A stretch of DNA of 64,000 nucleotides from Takakia lepidozioides. Its lineage: Eukaryota > Plantae > Bryophyta. The translations under genes and the position numbers were made by a program. The stretch's first letter is position 1, and each line of letters starts with the position of its first letter. Location of the stretch: contig CM060732.1 of NCBI GenBank assembly GCA_030704615.1, positions 37,696,001-37,760,000 on the forward strand. Direction: 5' to 3'. Shown in pieces: positions 1 to 39,729 of the stretch. The notes beneath the pieces are model-generated. The model worked only from the letters and a program-made list of their open reading frames with translations, was not told the origin of the DNA and did not search any database.

Positions 1-404
1 CTCACCGATTGCTCCACAATCGCCACCTTCACGTTGGGGTTCTTGCTCAATTCGTAAGCACACGAGAGGCCAGCAGATCCAGCTCCCACGATCACCACAT
101 CGGTGTCGGCATGAGTGATCATGTCCGTCATGTAGCGCCTCGTCATCTCCCGGGCAACAATCGACTCCTTGATGGGCTCGAACTTGTACTCATTCAGGTC
201 ATACTTGGCATCCGAGTAGAGAGCAGCCCTGACGCCAGAGGCATGGCAGACCCGGGGTGCAGGACGTGCAGCAGCTGCCAAGCGTGTGCCTGCGAAGGAG
301 GATCCCAGCACAGCAACCTGGGCACTGTTGGTAGACTTCAATTCCACCGCTATGCATCGGCTCACGACTGCGGGTGTCGCCGCCGAGGCTGTGCAGGCCG
401 CCAT
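1..404 (-). CDS. THI1: Thiamine thiazole synthase (THI1/THI4 family), plastid-targeted; 5' part only, runs off the left edge
   Basis: Manual minus-strand translation from ATG 404: [16 protein letters not shown]...(Ala/Ser-rich transit peptide)...[67 protein letters not shown]. This is the characteristic plant THI1 N-terminus with its GxGxxG dinucleotide motif. It is absent from the ORF track because it has no stop in the window. Confidence 0.96.
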
Positions 405-488
405 GAGTCAAGACTAGAAGAAATTTTGGGGAGCACAAAGGCGATAGGAAAGGTGGAGCGGAGGGTGGTGAAGAGGGAAGGGAAGCTC

Positions 489-499
489 GTTATATATAG
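489..499 (-). promoter_or_regulatory. Candidate TATA box of THI1
   Basis: Minus strand reads CTATATATAAC about 90 bp upstream of the THI1 ATG, followed by a CT-rich leader. Confidence 0.55.
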
Positions 500-2532
500 C
501 AAACAGTAAGAAGCAAAACGCCAACTTTGTTGCAAAAGATAAAAAAGATACTTCTTTAATGCTAACCGACATAGCTTTCTTTCCCATCTTCCCTGTTATC
601 AGATTACTGGGCCGACATTTTCAATTGGGTCCTTCGAAAAAATCTCGCATTCAGATTAGTTCATGAGGACGGAAATAGCTACAGTCTAATTTAAGTGACC
701 CTGGGATAATTGGGTCCAGTACAGCTTTCTTTAGAGGCTTTCTTATTTAGATGCTTCAACCCACTGTGCAGACATCGATTCGAGCGAAGTGGTTACGTGC
801 TTACATCCACAAGATTGCCTGTACAGATATTATTCCATGCACAAATGCACATGCAATCTCGCGAACTTTGATGCATGTGCCTGTAGGGTCCACCTACCCC
901 ACACACAGAGGCCCAGGCACTCGGGCCCCCAAGCTCGAATTGCCCCTCCAAACCATCAGGGGGGTAGTTCCAGGGAGAGCCCATCCTTAATCAACGGCCT
1001 CTCATGCCCCACAGGAGAGGAAACGAAGTACTTTGAGAAGGGGCCATAAAACTGAATCGCCCCTTTGTGAAGGAACCGGATTTTTGCGGACTCATGGAAG
1101 GGGCGATGTACTGGGGGGCCTCTTTAAGAATATCCTACCTAAACGAATGAGGGGTCTTTGAAGTTGGAGATGATTCACTTGGGGGTGCCTAGGAATCTGG
1201 CACTTAGCTCTTTGGGGTCCAAAAGGGAGAGGGAGTTGTCAATCTGACTTCGATTTTTTCAGTTGCTTCCCATCGATAACAAAGATGTAAATATTTAGTA
1301 TTAGGATTTGAACTTGCGTAGGGGAGAAAGCCTTGAGCAAGGTGGCTGAGCTGAAAGGTCTCCATATTACGTTGATGTTTGTACAGTTCAGCTCCAGCCT
1401 GCCAAGGAATGGTAAGCCCGTAGAGATAAGTGGATTCGGAGTTATCCTCACAGGAGAATTTCTGTGGACCAGGAGCATATATAGGGAGAAGTGTGGTTTG
1501 GCTCCCGTGCATCATCATGAAGAATATCTGACTTCATGGGGGCCACAGAGGATCACCACCCACGCGACAAACTTGGGCCGTTTCCGACACTCTTGCAAGT
1601 CATCCATTGATTCCACATACAATACAAACTCAAATCAGCAAAGATTGCGCTGCATGGGCCGTTGCCGAATTGCAAGCTGCAAAGTGAAAGAAAATGGATC
1701 GGATACATAAATCATAGACTCAGCAAGGTTTCAGAGCGATGGGCCTCCTCACTGCTTTATTAGCAAAATTGCTTCCAAGTTTGATGTCCACGAGTCACGA
1801 CTTCGTTTGGTGTGCTGCATTAACTGACTGCCGCAGGCATCTACAGGTGGGCAACTGACAGATTTTGCTCGAGCATACCCTCCTGGGGACAAGGCGCTGT
1901 GGGCAACGCTGATCGAGTACACAAAGCGACAATCCCGTGATGACTGTTGGCCGTGGCCAACCACTGGCCACCACTGGTTCTTGTCCTGGAAGTGTGCGCC
2001 ACTCTGCAACACCATCAGCGACCCCATTTCCAGAAATATCGGTCCTTCTGACGAGGCAGGCATGCATGCAAGGTGCGGTTTGTTCCCTGCTAAAGTTGCA
2101 CGGTGGGGCTAAATCAGTTGGGCATGATCATATGCGTTAAGAACCTGTTGACCAGGGCATCTGCTCACAATAGGGAACTCTAGGGCCACCAATATAGGGT
2201 ACTGAGATGCAGGTGGCCACCTTTTCCGTCATTCTATTCTTGTAAAAGTTTCTTCGGAGAAGTGGGATATTTTTGTGAATTGTGAGGTGAATTGCTGTAA
2301 GTAGTATCGAGTTTAGTGGAATCGTTCTGTATCTTTCCGAGTGAATAATTTTCCTCAGATTCTTTGGTATCTAGTTTGCTGCATGTGACTCGGTTGAATT
2401 CTGGTTGTTGGGGAAGACTGTCGCTTGAACGTGTGGTGTTATTGATCTCGGGTGGGGGCTGATTTCTCTTCAGATTGTTGGGAGCAGTTGTGTGTAGTGT
2501 TGCTCTTTAGAAGAAGCTCACAGGGTTTAGCT

Positions 2533-5485
<2,953 letters not shown>

Positions 5486-5932
5486 AGTGGAATGACTGGC
5501 CTCTTGTGGTTTCAATTGTAGGTTCTACACTGAATGCACTTCTTCCCATGTTTTTGAGATTTAAGTTTGTATGAGAAAAGTTTTGAAGGTGTGCTGGACA
5601 GAAATATTGGGCTGGGACGAAGGGGAAATGAGTGTGCCTGCAGTTGATAGCCTTTCTAGAGATGAACAACCAGCTCATGTATGACAGCTATGAACTTGAC
5701 AGATATTTGATCAACTTGCTTTGTACATTTGCAGGTAAAGAAGGAAGTTGTTGAAGAAGAACAGGCTTGTGGGCAAAAGGACCTTTTCTGTTTAGACTGT
5801 CAATGACTATGGTGATTTGCATCCAGTGTGCTTGCCGATGTACTAGAGTTGTGTAATTTGTGACAGACTTGTGCTTCATATCCCACAGCTTTGCCTTTGT
5901 TGTTTGCAGATATCAAACATGTGGACAATTAG

Positions 5933-5945
5933 CTGTTTGGTATGT
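5933..5945 (+). promoter_or_regulatory. Candidate riboswitch-regulated 5' splice site in the THIC 3' UTR (CTGTTTG|GTATGT; intron 5940-6064)
   Basis: CTGTTTGGT can pair with aptamer P4/P5 ACCTGAACAG (6145-6154) with one G-U pair and a bulge. The matching 3' splice site is CCAG at 6061-6064 inside the aptamer. A further UTR intron is plausible at 5735-5909 (GCAG|GTAAAG ... TTTGCAG|). Confidence 0.7.
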
Positions 5946-6056
5946 AAGTGTGTATGGTATGTCGATGTCACAGTAGAGAAACTCTAGTGTGTGCTTACAT
6001 GTTTTTGTAATGGCAATGGAAGAAGCTTGTTTGTACTTTCTGAGCTAATTCGACTC

Positions 6057-6180
6057 GGCACCAGGGGTGCTTGCTCAGGTGGTAGCACTGGCAACCATGG
6101 CTGCTAGTGCTCCGCACTAGAGCAGGCTGAGAGAGTCCCTTCGCACCTGAACAGGTTAATACCTGCGTAGGGAGCGTGCC
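6057..6180 (+). ncRNA. TPP riboswitch aptamer in the THIC 3' UTR
   Basis: GGCACCAGGGGTGCTTG...GCAGGCTGAGAGAGTCCCTTCGCACCTGAACAGGTTAATACCTGCGTAGGGAGCGTGCC has a P1 stem GGCAC/GTGCC, GGGG/CCCT, the conserved CTGAGA, and a P5 stem CAGGT/ACCTG. It matches the plant THI-box consensus. Confidence 0.97.
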
Positions 6181-6654
6181 AGACCTTTTTGTGTTTGTGT
6201 ATGCCACAGGCCCGCGACCTTCTCTCTCTCTTGCAATTTCAAGGACTGTTTCATCGGCCAACCTTCATGAGGCACCCTGAATGGTAAGAACTGTGGTCAG
6301 TCATGCTCCAATATTTCTTAAGCTTCATCACTTTGTTTGGATGCTGCTCTGCATTGTCTTGGATTGTGCATTTTGTGGAGTAATCAGATCTGCAGTAAGT
6401 AATCTGCAATTCATAGGGAGCCCTGTAGTGAATGCTCTACCCATCAATCCATGAATGAAGTTGAAAAGCCTTCATGCTAATGAAGGAAGCCTCTGAGGCC
6501 ACAAAAGAGGAACAAAATGCTTCCGTCCCTTGTTGCTTAGAATGAGATATGCTGGTGTGGCTGCAAAAGTCAAGCTTTCCTGGTTTCATTAAGGAAATCT
6601 GCGGAAGATGAGAGGGAGGGGAGCATATTTTTCCCCAAAGTCCAGTCTGCAAAA

Positions 6655-7235
6655 AGTGTGGAGGTGATCTTTGGAGAGTGACATTTTTATTTCAGAGTTG
6701 TTGCTAGATTTCTTAGTATCATTCAACCCATGATTTGTAGGCTGCAGTTCCTAGTAGTAAATTTTTCTTTAGGGTGGAAAGTTTACCTCATGCAATCATG
6801 TACAGTACCAACCCCAGGATTCTAAAACAAATGGTCACTGGTTATCCAATGTACATGTTGCTTATGGACAGAAATTTGCCAGAGAGTTCCTGATATTTGT
6901 TGGTCTTTTGCCTCAAGGACCATGTATCCAATTGTAAATACTAGGGTGTTGGTGCCTTGGCACAAATATTTGGGTTTGTAACAGTTAACTTCTAAAATTT
7001 GAGTTCAAGTGCGTTTCGAAAATTCAGTACTCTGCAAACTCCCACGATCTTCATCCTTCGAAACAAAAACTGTTTGAATGCAAAAATCTCTTGTCAAGGC
7101 CACAAACATTACTGTCTCTGAGATTACATATATGTATGCATCAGTCTGACTCTGTACACTCCAGACAGCCAAACACTTAAGTGTTGGGTCTCAATAAATT
7201 CTTCCACTGCAGAGGGACGAATACAGTTAAAAGAA
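6655..7235 (+). repeat. ~570 bp block present three times (6655-7235, 8653-9220, 15088-15680)
   Basis: All three copies start with GAGGT.ATCTTTGGAGAGTGACATTTTT and share CCCAGGATTCTAAA and GGTGCCTTGGCACAAATATTTGGG. Confidence 0.88.
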
Positions 7236-7570
7236 TCTTATTGTCTCCCTGGGTCTGCCTCACCCTTCTTTCCCAGTGTCTTCAGTCAATAGTAGAAATT
7301 TGGATGTCAGAAATGGGATGTCGTAGAGGAGAGCCATGGCAGAACCATTCCCATCCTAGAGGGCTGACATTCCACAGAGTCATCATTTGCAAGGCTACAC
7401 AATTTCTGAGATGTCATGCTTGCCATCAAAGAGATGCTGTAGCCTTTATCCCACAGGGTACCATACCTCCCAGTGGTGACAGAGATCACCACCCTAGTCC
7501 TTTGACAGCCAGCGGTATTGATTCATGAGTCTGAGCTTTAGTCTGCTCGCTGGACCGGTCTGGATAGAGA

Positions 7571-7638
7571 TTGTACTCATAAGACGTTGTTTGCCGTAGC
7601 CTTGTGGCCATTGACCCCGCGCCCAGTTTGAGCGGGAA
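7571..7638 (-). mobile_element. 68-bp 5'-truncated non-LTR retroelement end with a 14-bp TSD
   Basis: Flanked by direct repeats GGTCTGGATAGAGA (7557-7570, 7639-7652). Nearly identical to the element starting at 41994. Confidence 0.85.
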
Positions 7639-9229
7639 GGTCTGGATAGAGAGACAGAGACAAACCATAATTGATGTCGCTGTTACTCAGAGTCCTTACT
7701 CTGAATTTGTGAAAAGTCAAGTGAAGTTCTCCTTGATCTCCCTGTTAATTTGTGGAGTGTCATTGCTTTTATGTACATCTGCAACTCCATTTCTTTTGTG
7801 GATTATCCTCACAGAAATTGTAGCCTGCTTATGCCATTGGCACGTAAGATGTCTAGGGTGCATTGAAGTGCCCAGTTCAAGACAAAGTGTCACCCCATTG
7901 CAAAGAATTCGCCTGCACCCATGCCTACATGTAAGCTGGAATTTATAGTGCGAGCATTGTTGCTTTACAAGTCAATTGCAATTTCCAACTTTGCAAACTT
8001 CCCACTGCTCTGCATCTGCATATAAAGTTTAGAAATCATGTCCAGAAGAACTGGATGTCTGATCCTTCAACCTTCACAATATGACCCTTGTGTGATCTGT
8101 CTGACTTTATTTTCTAACACTTGGGTCCCTTAGTCAACCCATCATGTCAAGCATGTTACTACACTAACTCATAGCAGTGTTATCAAAGCGACATAGCAGC
8201 AGATCAGTGAAGGATATTTGTGTAACAATTGATGGACACATTGCCAAAGCTTTAGCAGCACGCAATTTGTTCCGACCACACGAAGGCCATGAAGGTTGCT
8301 TGATGCAGCAATGTCTATGAAATCAGCAAGACTTGAGGTTATCCCTTGCACTCTGATTTCACAACTGTCATTGTGATTTGGATGTAAGCTGACTTTCTGC
8401 CTGTGGTGCAGTATGAAAATGGTGTGAATCTTTGATTGATCAAGCAGGCAGAGATTGGATGACAGAACTGGTAAAATCTCTGGAGAAGGGGTTTTGATGC
8501 GGCAGCCAAATCATGATAGTGCTTGCTGCTGCTCTTTACATAAAGATTATCTACAGACTAGGGAGTTGTCCTTGCAATCACCATGACCTTCATTCATTTG
8601 AAGTCATAATACTGTAATTGAGACTTTATTCACACCATAGGTCTATAAGGAAGGTGCGGAGGTAATCTTTGGAGAGTGACATTTTTTATTTCAGAGGTGT
8701 TTCTTCGGATCATTCAACCCATGATTTGTAGGCTGCAGGTCCTAGTAGTAAATTTTTCCTTAGGATGGAAAGTTTATCTCAAGCAATCATCAACCCCAGG
8801 ATTCTAAAACAAATGGTCACTGGTTATCTAATGTACATGTTGCTTATGGACATTAATTTGCTAGACAGTTCTGTTGGGCTTTTGCCTCAAGGATCATGCA
8901 TCCAATTGTAAATACTAGAGTGTCGGTGCCTTGGCACAAATATTTGGGTTTGAAATAGCTACCTTCTAAAATTTGAGTTCAAGTGCGTTTCGAAAATTCA
9001 GTACTCTGCAAACTCCAAGCTCTTCATTCTTCAAAACAAATACTCTGAATGCAAAAATATCTTGTCAAAGAGTTTTTCCAAGCGTGCTACAAAATTACAG
9101 TCTCTGAGATTACATATATGATGCATACAGGCTGACTCTGTACCATACAGCCAAACACAAAGTATTGGGTCTCACTAAATTCTTCCATCCACTGGAGAGG
9201 ACTGAATACTAAAGTTAAAAGGACCATGC

Positions 9230-9910
9230 ATAGTAGGCCGGCATTGGAGCAGGCATCTGCTGTGTGAGTCAACAATTCCAACCATGCTAAACACCTAGAA
9301 TCCATTCAGGGCAAGGAAAGCATGTCAGCTTGATCTAAAAAAGCAAATGTGGCCATCAGAGGCGAGTTTGGTGAAAACTCCTGGAAGCTCTCGACTTGAT
9401 GAATTCAAGGTCCAATGGTGTACTATCAGATACCCTACAATAATCGAAGCTATTTCTTGGAAGCAAGGCCGTCTTGTTGACTCTGCTCAATGAAGCTGAC
9501 CTTGAGGAGGTTGTCCAAAGCCATGATCCAAAGACTATGATGAAAATGAAGTTAGGCATAAAACTTCCCTGAACTTGTTTCCAGTCTGGGATATGGGTGA
9601 GAACCTTGAGGATCTCAAGGGCCTATCTACCCTCGGTACTAGACTGAAATTTTAAACCCAGGGCAGGAAGCCTACCTTTGAACAATTAACAAGACCATCG
9701 AATGTTGTCCCTGCACCACTTTCAAAATCTTGAGACTGAGCCTAAAGCCCTAGGATCTAATTGCTGAGCAGCTCACACTCAGCAGATTGAAGCTTGTGTG
9801 AAGGGCCTTGTAGAGGAAATCTGGAAAGCCAGAGCCAGTTGGAAGTCCCACTCCTCACAAAGGTGGTCTATGGCCACAAGGCCATGGGCAAACAACCTCT
9901 CATGAGTACA
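9230..9910 (+). mobile_element. Degenerate LINE-like 3' fragment (second copy ~15690-16502)
   Basis: Ends in GGCCACAAGGCCA.GGGCAAACAA....GAGTACA, the reverse complement of the TSD-flanked inserts at 7571 and 41994. A decayed reading frame contains LVEEIWKAR, resembling the IWKxRN motif of LINE ORF2. Confidence 0.65.
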
Positions 9911-10444
9911 TTCTCTCTCTGCATGAGGCACTATATCTTAGACAATATCTTGATCAGTTGTAGTTTTGGGCTGCTTACAGTTGAGGGTCCCACTCTCCCT
10001 CTTATTTCATACATTTTTTTTTCCCATTTTCCCCTCTCTCTATGGATTGAGTTTTCTCTTAGAATTTGGATCCAACAGTCCATATGTGTATTTTGATGTA
10101 TTTGCTTCTGCTCTGTTCACTTCTCTACATTGGCGCTTTAACTGAAACTCATTCCATGCTTCAAAGAGGAGTGAGATCCATAGCAATCCTTCATGAATGC
10201 CTCAAAAATGGTATATGATCCTCATTCCAAAATCAGATGAACTACTTGAAATGGTCGTCAATGAACAAGGCTATTGTGAAAGAAGTTCAAACTATCAAAG
10301 AATTTCTCAACCTGTTGGACGACCCAGCTAGACAAGTCCTGAAATACAATTGTGCACCTCTTCAGCAGCACTCCAGCAAAGCCACCTTGGTTGGACCACA
10401 GTTGCATGTTGTGTCTGCATCCCATCCACCTCGTATTCCATTGT

Positions 10445-11480
10445 CTACCCATCTGCTACTGCTGCAGCAATTGATCTTCGGACGAAGAGATCTAAGATCC
10501 TTCGCTGTAACATCCATAAATCGATACTCAAGTGCTGACCAGCTAGGGAAGGCGGCACATCTGCGAGTGAAGGAAATACTACCTCTACCGGTACTTTGAG
10601 CATCGAACTGTTGGGAGATGAACACACATGCTCAGAAAAATTACGAGAGGTGCTTCTTGTAGCCCCTTGCTTTCGTGTGAAACAGAATAACTTGATAGTA
10701 TGTCTCTCTTCCACTATAAGGATTCCTATGGCGAAATTGCACTTGGAGGTCCAATCTTTTAACTCCTGAAGGAGTGCGCTCCTGGACTCATTCCTGTACG
10801 CTACCTCGAGTACCACAGTTGGACAATCGTCCAATTGGGCACTCACTGGATATATGCCCCCGTCGGGTTCTTTGATCCCCCTGGGTAGATGTACAGCTAT
10901 ATCATCGACAATGTCGAAGAGATGTTTTATGCCAAGCCGAATTAGCTCTACTACAAATTGCCCCTTGACCCATCCGGAGACCTTGGCGTGGACACCACTA
11001 GGATCTCCGTATAGCATCACCCTCCCAACACCTACTTCGTCTCCTTCTTCCCAAGAGAGCCTCCAGTGTGCTTCTTGGGTGTCCACCCACTGCTCATATG
11101 TAGATCGAGAAATAGCTTCTGAAACCAGATATGGACCCACGTTCCATCTGCCGTCTTCTTTAAGAAGCAAATTGTACTCCACGATGGCCTCCTGAAGGCC
11201 AGAATCCAACAGATCTGTACATCACCAAAAATTTGTCAACGCATAAAAGAGGAAGAAGAGGAAGAGATTTGTGAGAGAGAGTTTTCATGATGGTGATAGA
11301 ATTCTCACCAAACAACGATCGGCGTATCTTGGCATTGCGAAACCTCCACCTAAAGTTCACCAACAGATCAGACCAACCCATGCCTCACCTCACAGCCATA
11401 CACGATACAATACCAAAGCCTCGCAAAACAGTCAGAGCCTTGCAAAGCAATAAGACCACAGTGTAAATCTCCTCACCCAT
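10445..11480 (-). CDS. Uma2/DUF820-like PD-(D/E)XK restriction-endonuclease-fold protein; proposed exons 11480-11477 and 11214-10445 (257 aa)
   Basis: The ORF contains P-S-G-V-H, KEPDGG and PTVVLEVAYRNES, the pattern of Uma2/Crinkler-type REase domains. The track's start is TTG. A true ATG micro-exon (ATGG|GTGAGG) splices in frame to GTACAG|ATCTGTTGGAT, giving MDLLDSGLQE. Confidence 0.75.
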
Positions 11481-13479
11481 CGTGCCGCTAGCCGTTGCCT
11501 GCCTGCTCCTTTTCAAATTTACGATTCGGGAACGATTGTTGCCTTTGCTCTCCCCCTCAACTCTTTGCTATCTCCGCTGCAGTCTTCATCTAGCACCCGT
11601 GTCTCGTAGTTGCTTCTTACAAGCTATCGCTTATCAATTAACCTGTGATCTGCAAGGCAATACAGGACAACATCTCCACAGGGATATATCCCAAGCGGGG
11701 CACCTGCGCTCTGTCCCACAAGCTAGCTTTTTCCTTTAGTCTTTATGCAATGCCCCGAAGCTCGACCCGTCGATTTTGACGATTTTTCAACCCGGATCGG
11801 CGTGCAACTATCCAACGCCTAGAGTTGGAGAAGCCGGAATGTGCCGGTCTTATTTGCGCTCCGCTTCGGCGATTCTGGCAAGCTATTTCTCTTCGATTTT
11901 GGATGCTTGTGACTCAGTACGAGGCATTAATGCCCTACAGCCCTCCGATGTTGGTTTATTCTCAAATGGTCGGTTTTGTGGGCAGTGCCATTTCCTTGGC
12001 CAGGACCCCAATTCTGCCAGTGTTATTTTCAAGCGATGATAGAGGTTTGATGTGCTTGCAGGCAGGCATGAATGGGTTGGGATCTTCAGGAATCACGGTG
12101 GAAACAGGTATTGCCTGAAAGGCAATATAGCATGGGGATGGGTAGGGAGCATGCAAAGACAAGATCACAGGTTGCAGAGTGGTGTGGTTATGGAACTGGT
12201 CCACCATATACCTACTAATGACAGTTTGCTGGATAGTTCCAATGAGAAAATAGGGCTGAAAAGTGAAAGATCCAGGCACAAGTGTAGAAGAGAGTTGACA
12301 TGTTGAAAGTTTCTGGCTGCTTGTATATGACCTCGGAATCATTTGCTTGAAGAGTTGGAGTAAGTCCATAACAGTAGCGCATATGTATCACATCTCTGGG
12401 TAACCTGTCGGAACCCAGCCACGTACGTTGTTGCTTGTTTTCGTACCTGCAACTGGAATGAATGAAGCATTCTTACTGATGGAATAATATGGTGGAGGTG
12501 AACATTCGCTGCATTACATTTGGGAGGTGATAGTTGATATGATTATGCAAATTCTGCAAAGAAGATGAGGCATGCTTTGTTGTGGCTTGGAATTCAGATT
12601 AGTTGCAAACTTGGTTTGAGGTTGGAGCTGGGTCTGTTCTTGCAGAATATGGGTTTGGGTCTGCCTTTCCTTGGGTTGTGCATTTTCTCACTTACTACGA
12701 TAGGCCAGATGGAGCGATTTGGGGATGATTTGTCTTGGCTTGCAGTCGTTTGTGTCTTTGATGCTTTTGACAGTGCTTTGATGCCCTGAGCTTGGGTGTT
12801 GTTGTCGCAGCAGCAAGTGGATATTCTATTGCTAGTAATTTTGTTCCAAAGCTGTCTGAGTGACCAAAAGTTGCCAAACGTGCAAATGGGTGGGTGCATC
12901 TTGAACCTTGGCTGGATGAACTTCAGCATCAGGAAAAGCACGGGGGTCAAGGTCATAACCTTCAGCCTCAACACCAGCGGCCTCTTGTTCAACCGGTGTG
13001 AACGGATATGGCTTCGCACGCATCTCCACGGAGCCAATAAGAATGCTGAAGGTGCTTTGTAAATTTTCAGTTTTTCTGGTCACATGGACCTTCACGGCAT
13101 CCCTTTCCCTTCTCATAATCAAGAAAACTTGTTGTCTGAATTTTTTTTTAGTAGAATGTTTTGGATGCGAGCACGTGCTTGGTTGGATGTTACTAAGCAA
13201 ATTTGGTCAAGATTTAATACAATCTGAGCCCACCCAACAAAAGTTCTGGCAGTTTAAAATGCAACCCGAGAATCTTGGCCTGGTTGGCTAGGCAGGTAAG
13301 GGTTCTCATTTCATGGGGATCTCAAAGAAAGACCTATGTACATATGTCACTGTGAGGGTCGAATCTCCGGGAGAAGTACAGACTTATTTCATGTTCGAAT
13401 ATATTTCGTGTGTTATCTGATCAAGTATCCACAGGCATACTTACCTGGTTTATCCCTGTCCTGACTTCATACTGGATGA

Positions 13480-13880
<401 letters not shown>

Positions 13881-14502
13881 GACCGCCCTCTTGTGTTATG
13901 AAGCACAAGTCTGTCACAAATTACACAACTCTAGTACATCGGCAAGAACACCCCCTCCCTCCCTCTGCAGCATTGCTTACTAAGTTGTACACTACTGCTG
14001 GCTGCAAGGACCTCCCTTTACTCTCCCCTCTTTGCTAGTGTGACCTGCTGCAGGGATGATATTGATAACAAGTGTGACGTGGTTTAAGACTGGAGATCCA
14101 CAGGGATCTTTGTTGGTTGGCTGTGGATTCCACTTCACCTTCTTTTGTTGCAGAAAATGCTACTACGGGCAAGAGACTTTAGGGGTGAGGATTTGAGCTC
14201 CCTCAAACCTCAAATTTGTTTGTATGTGTTAGTTTTGCACGCATAATGGTTGTTGTTTTGCTCTGAATGGGTTTGAAGGATCCATGAGCTTGTCCCTACT
14301 TGAAAGTAGTTGCCATTAAGGAGACACTAGAGCACTTCCTACTTCTATTGTTGCTTTTTCGGATTGTGGAAAATTAGCTGGTTGGGATGTAAATGTGTAT
14401 GGTATGTCGATGTCACAGTAGAGAAACTCTAGTGTGTGCTTACATGTATTTGTAATGGCAATGGAAGAAGTTTGTTTGTCCTTTCTGAGCTGATTCTACT
14501 CA

Positions 14503-14611
14503 GCACCAGGGGTGCTTGCTCAGATGGTACCACTGGCAACCATGGCTACTAGAGCAAGCTGAGAGGGTCCCTTCGCACCTGAACAGGTTAATACCTGCGT
14601 AGGGAGCGTGC
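14503..14611 (+). ncRNA. Second TPP riboswitch aptamer (duplicated, detached from an intact THIC)
   Basis: GCACCAGGGGTGCTTGCTC...GAGCAAGCTGAGAGGGTCCCTTCGCACCTGAACAGGTTAATACCTGCGTAGGGAGCGTGC keeps all core elements. P3 is 13 nt shorter than in copy 1. Confidence 0.9.
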
Positions 14612-16602
14612 CAGACCTTTCTGTGTTTGTGTATGCCACAGGCCCGTGACCTTCTATGTCTCTTGCGATTTCAAGGACTGTTTCATCGGCCAACCTTCAT
14701 GAGGCACCCTGAATGGTAAGAACTGTGGTCAGTCATGCTCCAATATTTCTCAAGGTTCATCACTTTGTTTGAACGCTACTCTGCATTGTCTTGGATTGTG
14801 CATTTTGTGGAGTAATCCTTGCTGCATCTGAACCTTTCAATTCATAGGGAGCCCTGTAGTGAATGCTCTACCCATCAATCCAATGAAGTTCAAAAGCTGT
14901 CATGCTAATGAAGGAAGCCTCTGGGGCCACAAAAAGAGGAACAAAATGCTTCCCTGCCTTGTTGCTTAGAAAGACATATGCTGGTGTGGCTGCAAAAGTC
15001 AAGCTTTCCTGGTTCCATTAAGGAAATGTACAGAAGATGAGAGGGAGGGAGGAGAATATTTTCCCCCAAGTCCAGTCTGCAAAAAGTGGGGAGGTTATCT
15101 TTGGAGAGTGACATTTTTTATTTCAGAGGTGTTGCTAGATTTCTTAGGATCATTCAACCCATGATTTGTAGGCTGCAGGTCCTAGTAGTAAATTTTTCCT
15201 TAGGGTGGAAAGTTTATCTCAAGCAATCATGTACAGTACCAACCCCAGGATTCTAAACAAATTGTCACTGGTTATCTAATGTACATGTTGCTTATGGACA
15301 TAAATTTGCTAGACAGTTCCTGATATTTGTTAGGCTTTTGCCTCAAGGATCATGCATCCAATTGTAAATATTAGGGTGTTGGTGCCTTGGCACAAATATT
15401 TGGGTTTGAAATAGCTACCTTCTAAAATTTGAGTTCAAGTGCATTTCGAAAACTCAGTACTCTGCAAACTCCAAGCTCTTCATTCATCAAAACGAATACT
15501 CTGAATGCAAAAATATCTTGTCAAAAAGTTTTTCCAAGCGTGCCACAAACATTACTGTCTCAGAGATTACATATATGATGCATACAGTCTGACTCTGTAC
15601 CATACAGCCAAACACAAAGTGTTGGGTCTCACTAAATTCTTCCATCCACTGCAGAGGACTGAATACTAAAGTTAAAAGGACCATGCTTTGAACCTTAGTA
15701 GGCCGGCATTGGAGCATGCATCTGCTGTGTGGGTCAACAATTCCAACCATGCTAAACACCTAGAATCCATTCAGGGCAAGGAAAGCATGTCAGCTTGATC
15801 TAGAAAAGCAAATGTGGCTGTCCGGGGTGAGTTTGGTGAAAACTCCCCGCAGCTCTCGATTTGATGAATTCATGGTCCAATGGTGTAATATCAGATACCC
15901 TACGATAATCGAAGCTATTTCTTGGAAGCAACACCGTCTTGTAAGGGTAGATGAGATTTTCAGGTATCTGAATTTTTGCCAAGATGAATTGACTCTGCTC
16001 GATGAAGCTGACCTTGCGGAGGTTGTCCAAAGCCATGATCCCAAAGACTGTATGATGAAAATGAAGTTAGGCATAAAACTTCCCTGAACTTGTTTACAGT
16101 CTGATATGGGTGAGAACCTTAAGGAGGATCTCAATGGCCTATCTACCTTCGGCACTAGACTGAAATTTTAAACCCAGGGCAGGAAGCCTACCTTTGAACA
16201 ATTAACAAATGCAGAGAGGAAGACTATATCCATTTTCTGACACATTGTTTGAGATATTCTCAACAGAGAGTGACCCTCTTCAAGACCATCAAGAATGTTG
16301 TCCCTGCACCTCTTTCAAAATTTTGAGGCTGAGCCTAAAGCCCTAGGATCTAATTGCTGGGCAGCTCACACTCAGCAGATTGAAGCTTGTGTGAAGGGCC
16401 TTGTAGAGGAAATCTGGAAAGCCAGAGCCAGTTGTAAGTCCCACTCCTCACAAAGGTAGTCTGTGGCCACAAGGCCACGGGCAAACAATCTCTCAAGAGT
16501 ACACACTCTCTCACCCTTAGACAAACACTAGAACATTAGTTCTCATTCTTGGGTTCTAGTTTTGTTTCCTCTCTCATGTTTTCTTCGATTTTGTCCCATA
16601 AG

Positions 16603-16656
16603 CTCTATGAGCTTTCCGCGGACGTTATAAAGCACCATTTCATTTCATTTCATTTC
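16603..16656 (+). repeat. Short retroposon 3' end with a (CATTT)n tail; further copies at ~17299-17342 and ~47914-47950
   Basis: Shared GCGGACGTTATAAAG(CA/TT)CCATTTCATTTC in three places. The copies at 16603 and 17299 are absent from duplication unit 1. Confidence 0.7.
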
Positions 16657-17784
16657 TGCATGAGGCACTATATCTTGACCAGTATTTGGGCTGCTTACGG
16701 TTGAGGTCCCACTCTCCAGCTTATCTGATAGATTTTCTTTTCCCATTTTCCCCTCTCTCTGTGGATTGAGTTTTCTCTTAGAATGTGGATCCATACACTC
16801 CATATGCATATCCGATGTGTTTGCTTCTGCTCACTTCTCTGCATTGAGGCGTTAACTGAAACTCATTCCATGCTTCAAAGAGGAGTGAGATCCATAGCAG
16901 TCCTTCCTGAATGCCTCAAAAATGTTATATGATCTTCATTCTGAAAAGTAGAAGCATGGTATTGGAGGGAATCTCTGGCTATCCGTCAGTTAGTCTTCAG
17001 GTGCTTCAGATACCCCAGGCTTTGACTTCGTTTGTAAAATGGTGGGTGTGGTGGCATTGACCTCGGTGGAAACCACGGCAGGCAATGACTACACGCTTGG
17101 ACTGTATTCACCTATCCTAAATCAGGTGAAATGCCTTGATGGTTAATGTAACTATCAGGTAAAACCTTGTTTTGAGCCTAATTGAAAATGGTTGTCATTG
17201 AACTGGGCCCAGGCGGGATCCTTGGAAGATCCAGGTGACGCAAACATGGGGAAACAATACCTATAATCAATAGGTAACGTCTGTGTTCCATGCTTTCTCT
17301 CTATGATCTTTCCGCGGACGTTATAAAGCACCATTTCATTTCTCTATCCCAAGAGGTCAGCTTTGGCCGCAAGGCTAGAAACACACACTGCCGCAGACAT
17401 CGCCATCTCTTTGACGAGGCTACTGTAAAAGAAGTCCAAACTGTCCAATTGTGAGAACTACAAAACAACACACATCAATATGACCATTGTGGTCACCAAC
17501 CAGGTTGTTTGACTGGTTACATACACAGAACCATACCAGAAGGGGAGAACTTTAGAGAGCGAGGACGTCAGCAAGAGGCAGCTTCAGGAATTTCTTGGGC
17601 TTTAACAGGAGGCTTTTTTGTCCTTTATGCTTGAAGTAATCAAACTGGTCTGAAAAGAGCTACAACAGCCCTGTCATGGATGAGATGCAAAGATACTCTT
17701 CAGCAGCACTCCAACGAAGCCACCACTTTGGTTGGACCACAGTTGCATGTTGTATCTGCATCCCATCCACCTCGTTTCCATTGT

Positions 17785-18863
17785 CTACCCATCCACTGCT
17801 GCTGATGCAATTGATGTTCGGGCGAAGAGATCCAAGATCTTTTGCAGTAACATCCATAAATCAATAGTCTAAGCCAAGGAAGGCGGCACATCTGCAAGTC
17901 AAGGAAATACTACCTCTACTAGTACTTTGAGCATCGCCGTGTTGGGAGATGAGCACCTATGCTCAGAAAAATTACGAGAGGTGCTTTTCGTCGCCTCTTG
18001 CTTTCGTGTGAAACAAAATAACTTGAGACCTCTGTCTCTCTTCCGGGATGAGGATTCCTATGGCGAAATTGCATTTCGAGGTCCAATGTTTTAATTCCTG
18101 AAGGAGAGCGCTCCTAGACTCATCCTGTGCGCTCATTCCTGTGCGCTCATTCCTCATTCCTGTGCGCTACCTCGAGTACCACAGTTGGACAATCGTCCAA
18201 TTGGGCACTCACTGGATATATGCCCCCGTCGAGTTCTTTGATTGCCCTGGGCAGATGTACAGCTATCCAATGCCAAGCCGAATTAGCTCTTCTACAAATT
18301 GCCTCTTGACCCAGCCGGATACCCGGGCGTGGACACCACCAGGATCTCCGTATAGCATCACCCTCCCAACACCTGCTTCGTCTCCTTCTTCCCAAGAGAG
18401 CCTCCAGCCTCCAGTGTGCTTCTTGGGTGTCCACCCACTGTTCATATGTAGATCGAGAAATAGCTTCTGAAAGGATATGGACCCACGTTCCATCTTCCGT
18501 TTTCATTAAGAAGCAGATTATACTCCTGGATGGCCGCTTGAAGGCCCAAATCCAACAAATCTGTGTATACATCAATAAAATTCTGTCAATTAAAAGAGGA
18601 AGAAGAAATCCAACAGATCTACGAATACATCACCAAAAATTTGTCAACACTTTAAAAAGGAAGAAGAGGAAGAAATTTCATTGAGAAAGAGATTTCATGA
18701 TCGTGATAGGATTCTCACACTACGATCCTCGTATCTAAACCTTGACCTAAGGTTTTCCAACATAAGTATGGGACCAACCCGTGTCTCACCTCACAGCCAT
18801 ACACAATACAATACCATAGCCTCGCAAAGCAATCAACACCACAATGTAAATGTCCTCACCCAT
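17785..18863 (-). pseudogene. Broken copy of the Uma2-like nuclease gene
   Basis: Homologous peptides are split across several frames (SEAISRSTYEQWVDTQEAHW, IAVHLPRAIKELDGG, ESRSALLQELKHW). Small tandem duplications at ~18121-18168 and ~18401-18413, and KEPD has become KELD. Confidence 0.88.
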
Positions 18864-19279
18864 CGTGCCCGGTAGCCGTTGCCTGCTTTTTTTCAACTTA
18901 ACGATTCTGAAACGATTGCTAAGCGGAGCTCAACTCTTTGCTCTCCCCCGTCAACTCTTGGCTATCTTCTTCACTAAACTGTTCACATCTAGCGTGCCGC
19001 TATCCTATGTCTCCATTATGTGTTATCGTCCTCCCTTAGTTGTCGGCACCTCCTTTCTAAGGTCTACTAGCGCTTGCAGCAGTGTCCACCGCCGCCATAG
19101 CTCGGATCAGTATTTCCCATGGAAACCTACCAGCTCAAAATCAAGGAAAAATTAGCCTATTGATACAATTTATACAAATGACTGTTTTGAGATATATATA
19201 TATATATATATATATGGTCTTTTTCTGTCTCCTCTGTCAAAAACAGATCAAATTCATAAAGACAAAAAAGGGGATGATA

Positions 19280-31615: not shown

Positions 31616-33029
31616 CTACCTGCCAGTCGGAACATAGATGTTCAATGGAAGTACATAAGGTACAGCGCACTGCAGATCACACTTGAGAAGGTAATTCGTT
31701 GCCCGTTCTGCCACCTCCACACCACCATGAATTCTGCGGGCCCCAAGCAAGGCACCCCATACCGAAGCATCTGGTTTGATCGGCATATTGATAATTAAGT
31801 CCTCTGCCTCATCCAATCGCCCTGCACGGTTGAGAAGGTCCACCACACAGGCAAACTGCTCCTTTGTTGGTTTGAGGCCATGATGTCGACTCATAGAAGC
31901 AAAATAGTGATGACCTTCATCCACTAGGCCTGCATGACTACATGCAGAACAGATAGAAAGATGATACTGTCTGGCTTCAGACCCTCCTGCCACATCTGTT
32001 CGAACAGATGCAGGACCTCCCTACTACACCCATGCTGGGCATATCCTGAGATCATGGCACTCCATGAGACCACATCGCGTTTAGCCATGGTGTCAAACAC
32101 TTGATGTGCATCCTTCATGTTTCCACATTTGGGCATACATGCGAGTAAGGGTAGTCTCCAAATTCCTATCTAACGGAATTCCAGCTTTGATGATGTCAGG
32201 ATGGATCTCTTTGCCCTTCTCCAGAGCTCCTAGGCTGGCACACGCATTGAGAATGCAGGCGAATGTGACCTTGTTTGACGCCACACCTTCCCATTGCATT
32301 TGCTTATATATCTCAAAAGCCTCCCCACCACAACCATGTTGGGCATATCCTGCAATCATTGTAGTCCATGAGACCACATCTCGTTGAGTCATAGTGTCAA
32401 ATACACGGCATGCACCCCTAAAGTCCCCACATTTCGCATACATGTTAACAAGGGTATTTTCCAAATGAGTATGTGATGAGATTCCAGATTTCATAATGTC
32501 AGCATGGACCTCTTTGCCCTTTCCCAGGGCCCCTAGGCTGGCACAAGCATTGAGAATGCAGACGAAAGTCACCCTGTTCGGTTTTATCCCTTCCCATTGG
32601 ATTTGCTCGTAGATCTTGAAAGCCTCCCTACCATACCCATGCTTGGCATATCCTGCTATCATTATATTCCAGGTCATCATATCTCGTTCAGGCATTTTGT
32701 CAAGCACTTGGTGTGCATCCCCTATACTCCCGCACTTGGCATACATGAGTAGAAAAGTGTATGCATTGAATCCACTTTGGATGATGTGGACATGCACCTG
32801 TTTCCCTTCTAACTAGGTCTTTCATGTTGATGCACTCTTGCAACACACTGGCGTAAGTGTTGGAGTCTGCTTGAATGCCTCATTGGTTCAAAATATGCAG
32901 AGCCATTTTGAGCCGGCCTGCCTTGTATGGTGGTCTCACATCCCACAAAGTGTCAGACGAGTTTCCCGCTCTTGGTGCTTTTTCGGTGATTGTAGTGCTT
33001 CCTCTGCTGCATGTATTCAACCCTGCCAT
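31616..33029 (-). pseudogene. PLS-class PPR pseudogene, paralog of the gene at 51036
   Basis: Has the same MAGL start and PLS repeats but is split over three or more frames. The TGG of the E-domain GRW motif is TAG, and no DYW domain follows. Confidence 0.9.
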
Positions 33030-36170: not shown

Positions 36171-38631
36171 GTATGCTTCACCACCTGATTAGATACCTGA
36201 TTAAGTCCATGTGAGTCGTCTTGTTGTACCGTAGATGTTGATAACTTGTGCATCCGAAACTCACTAATCTTTGAAGTACAAGCTGCTACTAAGCCTTGGT
36301 AGAGCTCTCGTGATCAAGCGCGACCAACATCAAGTTGCTTCATCTGATAACGTCGGCACGAACAAATAGCGGACTGGCAATCTACGGGTAAGCTTGCATG
36401 ACAATGACATATTACCGGTAGGGCCAGAGAAGTCTTCAAGAACCGTGACAATGAATTCTACGAACATAGACTGATGTGTGGGCAATAAATTTAGAATTCA
36501 AGATGTATCTTTAGAGCAGCTTTCTGTACTGACTATGACATCGGATGTTGTGGTGAATTGTAAGAGCCTATTGCTCACGATGGTTCAATTCAATCGAGGT
36601 TATTTCTCACCTAGGCAAAGAAGTTAGCCTTGGAGTTTCGTCACACACACGCGGACCAGCTTGCGAGGAGCGAAGGCAATTTTGATGGACCGGCTCGCGA
36701 GGAGCTGAGGACAATTTTGATTAGCCTCTAGTGACTCTTCAGAGATCACAACTCTACAAAAACATTTTGTAAAATTTTGTGTGGCTAGTTTCTATCTAGC
36801 TCGATAGTGGTAGTAAATAGGACTTAGCTTGAGCTTACGTAGGAGAAGCAAGATAGCACGGGAGACCACTCGTCGCTGGAGCTCGACAGATTGATATTTG
36901 TTCCTATGATCCACCGCTACATTCCCAATAAACCGCATTCGGAGCAGTGCACGTCGGCCATGGTGTGTTCCCATGGAACCCGGGCGTCAAAACCCGCCAT
37001 CTACATCGTCCAAGAGCCGACACCTGAAGGTCCCGTCCAAGAGCCCAAGTTATGGAACTAGCATGGCCTGTGTTCCCCTGGAACCGGGGTGTCCCCTGAC
37101 CTGACAGTCCGACTGTGTCCAACAGCCTTATTCGGACGACATGGCGCGGGGCAAAGCCTGCCCGTTCCTATCGTGTGGCTTCTTGGAGATGCGGGTCTCC
37201 GGGCCGTTGTCACCCCACCCTTTCTGCAGAGACAGGGAGGAGCAGCAAGGATTGGAACCGGCGTTTGCGACCACGCCATTATGACTGCCAGTAACAGCAG
37301 TATGCGCTGAGCAGCTTCCGCGATGATGCACAAGTGGGCTCTGCCTCTGCAATGTTCGCTTGGAAAGATAACAGGAAGAACCAATAGCATTCTAAAATCT
37401 TTAATAGTGAGTCCCGGGTAAGACTTGGGGTTGGGGAGGATTTCCCCCCACCGGAATCTGGCAATAGTAGAGTCAAATGGCATGATGTTACATTATTGCC
37501 ATTGTTTTCCAACAAAAGTAAGCCCTTGGAGTGCTCGGGTACACCTACCTACCTAGCCTGCCTCCCATCCCTCTAACTTGTGATCAAACAACACAAGCTT
37601 CGTGTGGGGCTGACAAGATTTGTAGGACCCTCTTGATCATCACATGTTGGGTTACTGGATTGGGATAATTGCCCTCAATTTCTGGCTGTTCGCACTAGTG
37701 TGGAGCTATGGCAGCTGGATGTTGTTTGTGCTCAGATTCAGGGTGTAGAGTGATTGCCTTCTTCTGCTGCTCATGACACTTGTTTGAGTTGTCAAAAGGA
37801 AGGAGAAATGCAATTCTGGGTTGCAATGAAAAACAGAATTTCAATTTCCTAGTTGCATGCAAGGGAATCGGAGCTAACATGTGGGCGGGGCTGTAAGTTA
37901 ACTGTGATTAGAATCTGTTTATCAAGGTTGAAGATGCAAGATCATAAGACGAGATCAGAAGAGGTGCCAGGCCGCTTTTCTCCATTAGCTCCTGCTCATT
38001 CTTTCGGAGCATGTCTCAATCAGACAGGATATCATGCTTTGTTGCTTGAATGCATCTTAGCAAAATCTTACTATAGAATTGTCTGCTTTATACAAAACGA
38101 ATGAACGTCTGCGCGATGTGAAGCGAGCAGACGAACACATAGGCTTCTGTGTGATCTGCCTGTCCGTGATGGTTGGCCGCATCGCTGGGCACCCAAGCTT
38201 GTCCTTCTATCTGTGGCTGCCATGGACCACTTTTCAGACCCCTTTTTGTATGGTATGCATCATGGGTTGGGGCTAGAAGGCAGTTTCTTGCTGGGGGGAA
38301 GTTTGGGGCTAGTTATGATTATGGAGAAGGCTTACTTTTGGAGATCTTAGGGTAGTCTGATTCCACAGATATTAGATCTTTGGAATTTTCTAATCTGTTT
38401 GTAGATCTTGGACTAACTTGGTGGTGTGTAGAAAAGACCATCTCTCCTCTGCCATCTGTTTGCTTGACTGTGCTGGGACTTGGATAGTATGACTGGTTAG
38501 GGATAAAATCATCTGCATGTTCTGAAGAGTCGTGCTTCTTCGTCAACAACCTGTCGGGTGCATATCGTTTGGAATTCGGAGGGTGGATTCTGGCATAGGT
38601 TAAAGTGATAGCACAAACCCAGTCGAGAAAG

Positions 38632-39729
38632 ATGGAAGGATTGAGTGACGATGAAGTAGGGCAAATCTTGCAGAGAGTGAAAAGCAGGGCAGATCGCAGG
38701 GCATGTGCACAGGTGTGTGCGCAGTGGCACAGGGTAGAAGGCTTCACGCGGTCAGCGCTGCGGGTACTGGACCCCCAATTCTTGCAATCCTACCTTCCCC
38801 ACTTTCCGAATCTTCTTACCCTTGAGGCGACCACGGGTATTTGTGACAGCGACCTCGCATGCATCGGAGAGCAGTGCCAGAGCCTTCAAATCCTGAACCT
38901 GAATCTCAATAGATGGAGGCGAGTGATGGATTTAGATAGCTTTGACGACGTCCATGGTTACGATGGTGTCGGGGATTCAGGCTTGGAGGCCATTGCTGCA
39001 GGCTGTAAAGACTTGCAGCATATCAGTCTGAGGTGGCGACAAGGCATAGGCGACATCGGGGTCAGTGCGTTGGCTAGGAATTGTCATTCTCTGGTGCAAC
39101 TAGATTTTGCTCACTGCAAACGAATCACTGATCAAGCACTGGAAGCACTGAGTTCGGCCCCTTCAGTGCAGGTGCTCATCCTCCGAAGCTGTACGTTGAT
39201 CTCCGACTGGGGAATTGGGCTTCTAGGACGCGGCCGGATTGCCAGAACCTTGAGGCGTCTTGATCTGTGCGAGTGTGACCAACTTACCGATGGGGGAATA
39301 GTGCTTTTGCAGCTGTTGCCAGTGTTGCAAATTTTGAATTTGGCTGAGTGCGGGGCAAGAATTACAGACCTTGGAGGGGTGGCAATTGCAGGCATCTGCA
39401 CTTTGCAGAGTGTAAATCTTGCATGGCTTGTCAACATAACAGATGTCTCATTGCTGGCATTTGGGCAGAATTGTTTGGACCTAAGGGAGGTCAATTTGAG
39501 CGGCTGTGAATTGGTCACTGGGGTAGGGCTTCGAGCCTTCTCTCGACACGGTGCATTACAGGCTCTGACTCTGTCAGCCTGCTTTAACATTTATAGTGAC
39601 GATGTGGATCAAACAGTAACCTCTTGCTTGGGATTAGAATATTTGGGTCTTGATCGGACTTTAAGACCTTGGATGCCTGCAGACTCGCTAGAGAGACTTC
39701 AAAATCGCTGCCAAATTGAATGGCTATGA
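38632..39729 (+). CDS. Intronless F-box/LRR-repeat (AMN1/RNI-like) protein, 365 aa
   Basis: N-terminal F-box-like LSDDEVGQILQRV...ACAQVCAQW, then repeated LxxLxLxxCxxITDxG units. Confidence 0.9.
   Translation: MEGLSDDEVGQILQRVKSRADRRACAQVCAQWHRVEGFTRSALRVLDPQFLQSYLPHFPNLLTLEATTGICDSDLACIGEQCQSLQILNLNLNRWRRVMDLDSFDDVHGYDGVGDSGLEAIAAGCKDLQHISLRWRQGIGDIGVSALARNCHSLVQLDFAHCKRITDQALEALSSAPSVQVLILRSCTLISDWGIGLLGRGRIARTLRRLDLCECDQLTDGGIVLLQLLPVLQILNLAECGARITDLGGVAIAGICTLQSVNLAWLVNITDVSLLAFGQNCLDLREVNLSGCELVTGVGLRAFSRHGALQALTLSACFNIYSDDVDQTVTSCLGLEYLGLDRTLRPWMPADSLERLQNRCQIEWL

Follow-up and report, generated by a model that had tools for sequence, protein, structure and literature searches.

A head-to-head THI1–THIC gene pair in the moss Takakia lepidozioides, probably a lineage-specific adjacency of individually riboswitch-controlled genes

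Introduction

Plant metabolic gene clusters comprise three or more non-homologous and co-regulated pathway genes, mostly of specialised metabolism, and head-to-head genes count, by the operational definition, as a bidirectional promoter pair if their start sites lie less than 1 kb apart. Here, we compare with these arrangements, and with the riboswitch-bearing thiamine genes of plants and prokaryotes, a stretch of 64,000 nucleotides (nt) from the moss Takakia lepidozioides (GenBank assembly GCA_030704615.1, contig CM060732.1, positions 37,696,001 to 37,760,000 of the forward strand; below, the window, with positions counted from its first letter) in which THI1, encoding thiamine thiazole synthase of the THI4 family, and THIC, encoding phosphomethylpyrimidine synthase, lie head to head. 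Of the two enzymes, THI4 performs a single turnover and THIC, a radical S-adenosylmethionine (SAM) enzyme, is slow. In prokaryotes, Thi4 genes cluster with sulfur-relay genes (PMC13325395). Non-seed plants retain a thiamine diphosphate (TPP) riboswitch in the 3' untranslated region (UTR) of THI1 as well as of THIC, and the THI1 riboswitches are an ancestral trait that these plants have kept (PMC11521341). A PLAZA-based THI1 synteny survey does not mention THIC as a neighbour (PMC11521341), and our literature search found no report of THI1–THIC linkage, of a head-to-head arrangement or of a shared promoter of the two genes in plants.

Based on gene models, transcript contigs, aptamer searches and a survey of THIC loci in other streptophytes, we suggest, with a probability of about 0.6, that the adjacency of THI1 and THIC is lineage-specific and neutral and that each gene is controlled by its own riboswitch.

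Results

The gene pair

A preliminary description of the window, made from its sequence alone, had named the two genes THI1 and THIC and had them diverge across 2.1 kb, and both statements hold. THI1 (minus strand, ATG at 404) and THIC (plus strand, ATG at 2533) are divergent across 2,128 bp (405-2532), and their identities are borne out by Pfam matches to Thi4 and ThiC_Rad_SAM and, for THIC, by a tree of THIC proteins. Transcript contigs came from X5 and X6, two runs that behave like RNA and originate from different studies. The features of the pair are the following (CDS, coding sequence):

1..404, minus strand: first coding exon of THI1 (thiamine thiazole synthase, THI4 family), from the translation, Pfam Thi4 and an X5 contig on 300-453
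405..453, minus strand: THI1 5' UTR, from the transcript contig end at 453
454..2450, no strand: unique, non-coding spacer between the two transcript 5' ends, with no transcript contig
489..498, no strand: TTATATATAG, a TATA-like sequence that precedes the THI1 transcript end by about 40 nt, from a motif scan; putative promoter element
2451..2532, plus strand: THIC 5' UTR, minimum extent, from an X5 contig that starts at 2451
2533-2885, 3069-3196, 3568-4356, 4515-4867 and 5099-5485, plus strand: THIC (phosphomethylpyrimidine synthase) CDS, from the gene model, RNA splice joints and Pfam
5518-5734, plus strand: THIC 3'-UTR intron, GT..AG, starting 32 nt past the stop codon and spliced out in both RNA runs
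5940..5962, plus strand: cluster of donor-like GT sites (GGTATGTAAGTGTGTATGGTATG), candidate riboswitch-controlled 5' splice site, from the sequence; no spliced contig was seen
6053-6191, plus strand: TPP riboswitch aptamer of THIC (Rfam RF00059, 61.2 bits, E value 1.5e-9)

THIC is intact, with five exons that encode a product of 669 amino acids from the ATG at 2533. Every intron is of the GT..AG type, and all four coding introns are reproduced exactly by spliced contigs of X5 and X6. Exons 3, 4 and 5 match ThiC_Rad_SAM (PF01964) with E values of 3e-97, 3e-60 and 1e-12, respectively, and together they match profile positions 1-244, 247-362 and 365-419 of 420. The translation of exon 5 contains CSMCGPKFC, which matches the C-terminal CX2CX4C iron-sulfur cluster motif of the ThiC radical-SAM family. 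The protein is 84-92% identical to moss THIC proteins, and in a maximum-likelihood tree of 41 THIC proteins it falls inside the moss clade (support 99/99) as sister to Sphagnum (96/85), on a long branch of its own. As judged from this tree, the organism that carries this THIC is an early-diverging moss.

THI1 extends past the left end of the window, and only its N-terminal part (the first 134 codons) lies inside; the active-site cysteine that donates sulfur in suicide-type enzymes would be encoded farther left. The stop-free translation of 404..3 on the minus strand, from the ATG at 404, gives 134 residues, in which a Ser/Ala-rich, transit-peptide-like N-terminus is followed by the start of a dinucleotide-binding fold with the Rossmann GxGxxG region. 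Residues 85-134 match positions 2-51 of the 235 positions of the Thi4 profile (PF01946; E value 3.4e-18, 66 bits, cut-off 26). The gene is expressed, as a 2,423-nt X5 transcript contig aligns with 300-453. Past 453, this contig has 22 extra letters (CAAAGTTCCTTTTGGAGGCCTC, plus strand) with no match in the 64-kb window. There is no splice acceptor at the 454 boundary; the extra letters are probably an assembly or library artefact and may otherwise represent a distant 5' exon.

TPP aptamers of THIC and THI1

The THIC riboswitch had also been placed in the 3' UTR from the sequence, and this location is confirmed by transcript data. The match to RF00059 exceeds the gathering score of 54.3, and an X6 contig joins the THIC coding exons to 5735-6299 without a break, so the aptamer is transcribed in the 3' UTR. 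This contig is unspliced through the aptamer to at least 6299, and contigs, which drop rare isoforms, show only the unspliced form across the aptamer. Both aptamers of the window, i.e. that of THIC and an orphan copy described below, score above the gathering threshold, and the CUGAGA and ACCUGA...GGGA cores typical of TPP riboswitches are present. Among four moss species, the aptamers do not vary in their core, and the THIC aptamer of the window has a long insertion in P3. In a crude duplex test, pairing of the region upstream of the aptamer with P4/P5 was no better than that of shuffles. Just 3' of the aptamer, at 6201-6212, the letters GCACAGGCC are invariant in both window copies and in Sphagnum, Physcomitrium and Ceratodon; they resemble a splice acceptor (CAG/G) and could contribute to the expression platform. 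Candidate acceptors lie at 6062-6063 and 6208-6209, to be paired with a candidate donor at 5940-5957.

The THI1 transcript appears to carry a TPP aptamer of its own. Part of the X5 THI1 contig reads as 6045-6075 in reverse complement and continues with ...GAGCAGGCTGAGAAAAACCC... (TCACGAGCAGGCTGAGAAAAACCC). Read in the sense of the THI1 messenger RNA (mRNA), it gives a TPP aptamer core consisting of GGCACCAGGGGTGCTTGCTC, the loop TCAC, GAGCAGGCTGAGA and ACCC, with a short P3. We assign this aptamer-like sequence to the THI1 transcript because the depth of the X5 contig that holds it is that of THI1 (184) and not that of THIC (12). The aptamer itself sits outside the window, and about 60 nt of it are seen, via the X5 contig. 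In total, 31 identical letters are common to the THI1 contig and the THIC aptamer (6045-6075). About 12 nt of these lie 5' of P1, at positions that vary among moss THIC genes in the alignment, and the shared flank includes both a CTAAT branch-point-like motif and the AG in ACCAG/GGG. This identity could reflect constraint on the flank or splice platform or, alternatively, sequence exchange between the two inverted aptamers.

The spacer

In agreement with the preliminary description, no gene lies between THI1 and THIC. The spacer has no open reading frame (ORF) longer than 125 amino acids, and the six longest have no Pfam match; it has no transfer RNA and no Rfam match above threshold, and neither X5 nor X6 has a transcript contig between 454 and 2450. 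A snoJ26 candidate at 479-586 (25.7 bits versus a gathering score of 50, E value 0.21) was rejected as a chance match. The spacer (405-2532) has no second copy in the window, its repeats and palindromes, searched for signs of a shared element, are limited to chance-level matches of 12-18 nt, and it has no similarity to the THIC loci of other species (THIC plus flanks of at most 10 kb).

The contigs place the 5' end of the THI1 transcript at about 453 and that of the THIC transcript at or before 2451. Because contigs do not map true start sites, the resulting distance of up to ~2.0 kb is an upper estimate that a longer THIC 5' UTR could shorten. By these contig ends, the two genes lie farther apart than the 1 kb allowed to a bidirectional promoter pair, and the TATA-like element at 489..498 probably belongs to a core promoter of THI1's own.

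THIC loci of other streptophytes

THIC loci with flanks of up to 10 kb were compared in 10 other streptophyte species, representing three moss genera, three liverworts, two lycophytes, one fern and one zygnematophyte alga. The called neighbours of THIC at these loci (L numbers) are the following:

Physcomitrium patens, L001: WEMBL and LUC7
Sphagnum balticum, L005: ATG11 and DUF1218
Sphagnum metagenome contigs, L012-L015: DUF1218 downstream; a Helitron-like fragment at one end
Ceratodon purpureus, L007: ATG14 and DUF2921
Riccia sorocarpa, L006: CBS and thioredoxin
Riccia fluitans, L017: Exo_endo_phos and methionine synthase
Calypogeia fissa, L009: none called
Diphasiastrum complanatum, L008: none called
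Selaginella moellendorffii, L010: Med26, CN_hydrolase and others
Adiantum nelumboides, L011: none called
Closterium, L016: P5-ATPase

No Thi4-domain gene is among the called THIC neighbours in the 10 species, and tblastn with the THI1 N-terminus of the window found nothing at an E value of 1 or below at any of the surveyed loci. Of six loci scanned with Rfam, five contain exactly one aptamer, located downstream of THIC, and the Calypogeia locus contains none; a further aptamer, as a sign of THI1 close by, is present in none of the six. Flank synteny between the window and the Sphagnum, Physcomitrium and Ceratodon loci, searched with tblastx, does not go beyond THIC and its aptamer.

The positions of the THIC introns vary between lineages: exon breaks near residues 161, 425 and 541 are common to the window and Sphagnum (L005 and L012, compared with L001 and L006-L009). 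At the liverwort and lycophyte THIC loci, residues 161-659 form a single uninterrupted tblastn block.

The duplicated segment and other genes of the window

Downstream of THIC, 4937-11573 has been copied in a tandem segmental duplication to 13438-18967, with 75-98% identity and internal rearrangements that include an inverted piece of 55 nt (5826-5880 versus 13951-13897). The duplicate comprises a portion of THIC intron 4, exon 5 with a frame shift (75% protein identity), the 3' UTR with its aptamer and a degraded Uma2-like copy. THIC exons 1-4 are absent from the duplicate, and no copy of these exons was found nearby. The core of the orphan aptamer is nearly intact, with two point changes and a deletion of 13 nt in P3 in the alignment, and the first two donor-like sites (GGTATGTAAG) are mutated in this copy. 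The orphan aptamer is a natural case that could help to define the flanking elements that the switch needs. A segmental duplication with rearrangements of this kind indicates that the region is structurally dynamic and locally rearranging. The features of the duplicate and the other genes of the window are:

10445-11209, minus strand: Uma2-like ORF, 254 amino acids; its degraded second copy (18147-18575, minus strand) lies inside the duplicated segment
13438..13879, plus strand: THIC pseudogene fragment with frame changes, duplicated from intron 4 and exon 5, from sequence comparison
14498-14623, plus strand: second, orphan TPP aptamer of the duplicated THIC 3' end (Rfam RF00059, 62.8 bits, E value 6e-10)
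32093-32797, minus strand: second PPR fragment
38605-39729, plus strand: F-box and leucine-rich-repeat-like ORF, 374 amino acids, single exon
51036-53261, plus strand: PPR-DYW protein, an intact ORF of 741 amino acids that ends in the DYW tripeptide

No database protein is more than 55% identical to the 741-amino-acid PPR-DYW protein, which fits a lineage with many RNA-editing factors.

Discussion

We suggest that in this moss THI1 would supply the thiazole half and THIC the pyrimidine half of thiamine from two genes that are both intact and expressed, each with its own proximal promoter. Through the TPP aptamer in the 3' UTR of each mRNA, thiamine diphosphate would feed back on each transcript separately, and, by homology with characterised plant THIC genes, this feedback would involve 3'-UTR splicing and the choice of the 3' end. 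In this scheme, the two branches are probably coordinated by the shared ligand, and perhaps by shared transcription-factor inputs, rather than by one bidirectional promoter. The adjacency would be an acquisition of this lineage, in a region subject to local rearrangement, and we infer that it is most likely neutral. For one named pair of genes, adjacency by chance is unlikely, at about 2 divided by the gene number, but such pairs will turn up when every window of many genomes is scanned.

Several points weigh against a lineage-specific and neutral adjacency. The survey covered one THIC paralogue per species and 10 kb on each side, its THI1 probe consisted of the first 134 residues only, and it included no close relative of this species. 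The divergent spacer of 2.1 kb is shorter than the rough gene spacing of the window (~8 kb per gene), and enhancers or a common chromatin domain could couple THI1 and THIC across it. Moreover, motifs resembling CCA1-binding sites (AAMAATCT) occur at 638 (plus strand) and 2479 (minus strand), one near the 5' end of each gene and in the same orientation relative to its own gene; two such motifs compare with 0.15 expected, an excess that is weak given that nine motifs were tried in the spacer scan. This motif pair is a hint that a common clock input could act on both genes.

These motifs, the divergent arrangement with nothing in between, the TPP aptamers on both mRNAs and the cost of making both enzymes are the points in favour of a selected two-gene module, in which the 2-kb spacer would act as a shared divergent regulatory region, by way of enhancers or open chromatin, to balance transcription of the two branches, the riboswitches adding parallel feedback by TPP. 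We regard such a module as possible but unlikely. The preliminary description had gone further and proposed a shared bidirectional promoter, for which we found no positive evidence: the transcript ends are up to ~2.0 kb apart and thus past the usual operational limit of 1 kb, and THI1 has a TATA box of its own. Also against a selected module are the absence of the pairing at the THIC loci of 10 other species and a spacer that resembles none of the THIC flanks of the surveyed species. The transcript depths speak against it as well, if weakly: in X5 the THI1 contig has about 15 times the depth of the THIC contig, and in X6 THIC is deep and THI1 has no contig, contig depth being a poor measure and an unreliable gauge of THI1/THIC co-expression, a limit that our own reading shares. 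An extension of the module idea, according to which the two costliest thiamine-precursor genes form, in a deep moss, a divergent pair that shares a regulatory region and has aptamers with 5' flanks identical over at least 31 nt, possibly by sequence exchange, and would thereby form a eukaryotic counterpart of the riboswitch-bearing thiamine operon and a rare cofactor cluster, strikes us as improbable.

The preliminary description left it open whether the pairing is ancestral or specific to a lineage. The second alternative agrees with the absence of the pairing at the THIC loci of 10 other species, whereas the first was not upheld, as the 10-kb THIC flanks of these streptophytes, including those of the sister lineage Sphagnum, lack THI1. 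An arrangement ancestral to land plants or mosses, with repeated losses elsewhere and retention in this lineage alone, would suit the position of this species on a deep moss branch and the ancestral THI1 riboswitches kept in non-seed plants (PMC11521341). Such a history would require that Sphagnum, Bryopsida, liverworts, lycophytes, ferns and zygnematophytes each lost the pairing independently, and it is at odds with the lack of flanking synteny of any kind around THIC, and we therefore consider it very improbable. Finally, a mis-assembly might have joined THI1 and THIC, and the duplicated region downstream of THIC could in principle confuse an assembler. This concern, which the preliminary description had raised, can practically be set aside: the spacer is unique in the window, and Logan DNA contigs, the product of an independent k-mer assembly, cross the junction in one piece of 4.7 kb (300-5023) in two runs, with 5 base differences from the window, the two runs representing one sample that may be the source sample of the genome assembly.

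If the pair is functional, it would provide a natural case in which transcription of the two thiamine branches is coordinated, would be of use in vitamin B1 engineering, in which THI1 and THIC must rise together, and would be one of the rare gene pairs of primary metabolism in plants. At present, the value of the locus is mainly descriptive: it provides a well-supported gene model of THIC and its riboswitch in a deep moss lineage, and it adds transcript evidence for a riboswitch-bearing THI1 in that lineage.

The components of the locus are all of known kinds, i.e. a THIC riboswitch, a THI1 riboswitch in a non-seed plant and a divergent gene pair; it is the linkage itself that is unreported, as judged from our literature search. 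Arabidopsis THIC (Wachter et al. 2007, Bocobza et al. 2007, as cited in PMC11521341) belongs to the same enzyme family and likewise has a 3'-UTR aptamer. The constitutive intron just past the stop codon and the donor-like sites upstream of the aptamer are found in plant THIC genes and here, as are the CTAAT branch-point-like motif and the AG (ACCAG/GGG) at the 5' edge of the aptamer. Nothing essential differs, and the long P3 insertion of the window aptamer is shared with other mosses. For THI1 (PMC11521341; Bocobza et al. 2007, as cited there), the TPP-core-like sequence of the THI1 contig fits riboswitch control of both branches in bryophytes, and the difference from the described non-seed THI1 genes is that THI1 adjoins THIC in the window.

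The bacterial and archaeal thiamine operons (thiC with thi4 or thiG and others) resemble the locus in the linkage of genes of the two branches and in the response through RF00059. In contrast to their single 5' aptamer and single co-directional polycistronic transcript, the window has two divergent monocistronic genes with 3'-UTR aptamers of their own that would act on nuclear RNA processing. Bidirectional promoter pairs are head-to-head and functionally related, as are THI1 and THIC, whose transcript ends are separated by ~2.0 kb with a TATA box on the THI1 side. With the plant metabolic clusters, the locus shares the adjacency of non-homologous pathway genes. However, the pair consists of two genes only, serves cofactor metabolism and is not conserved. 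The remaining genes of the window are Uma2-like, PPR-DYW and F-box/leucine-rich-repeat genes, which leaves two pathway genes where a cluster has three or more, and the term mini-cluster used in the preliminary description was an overstatement.

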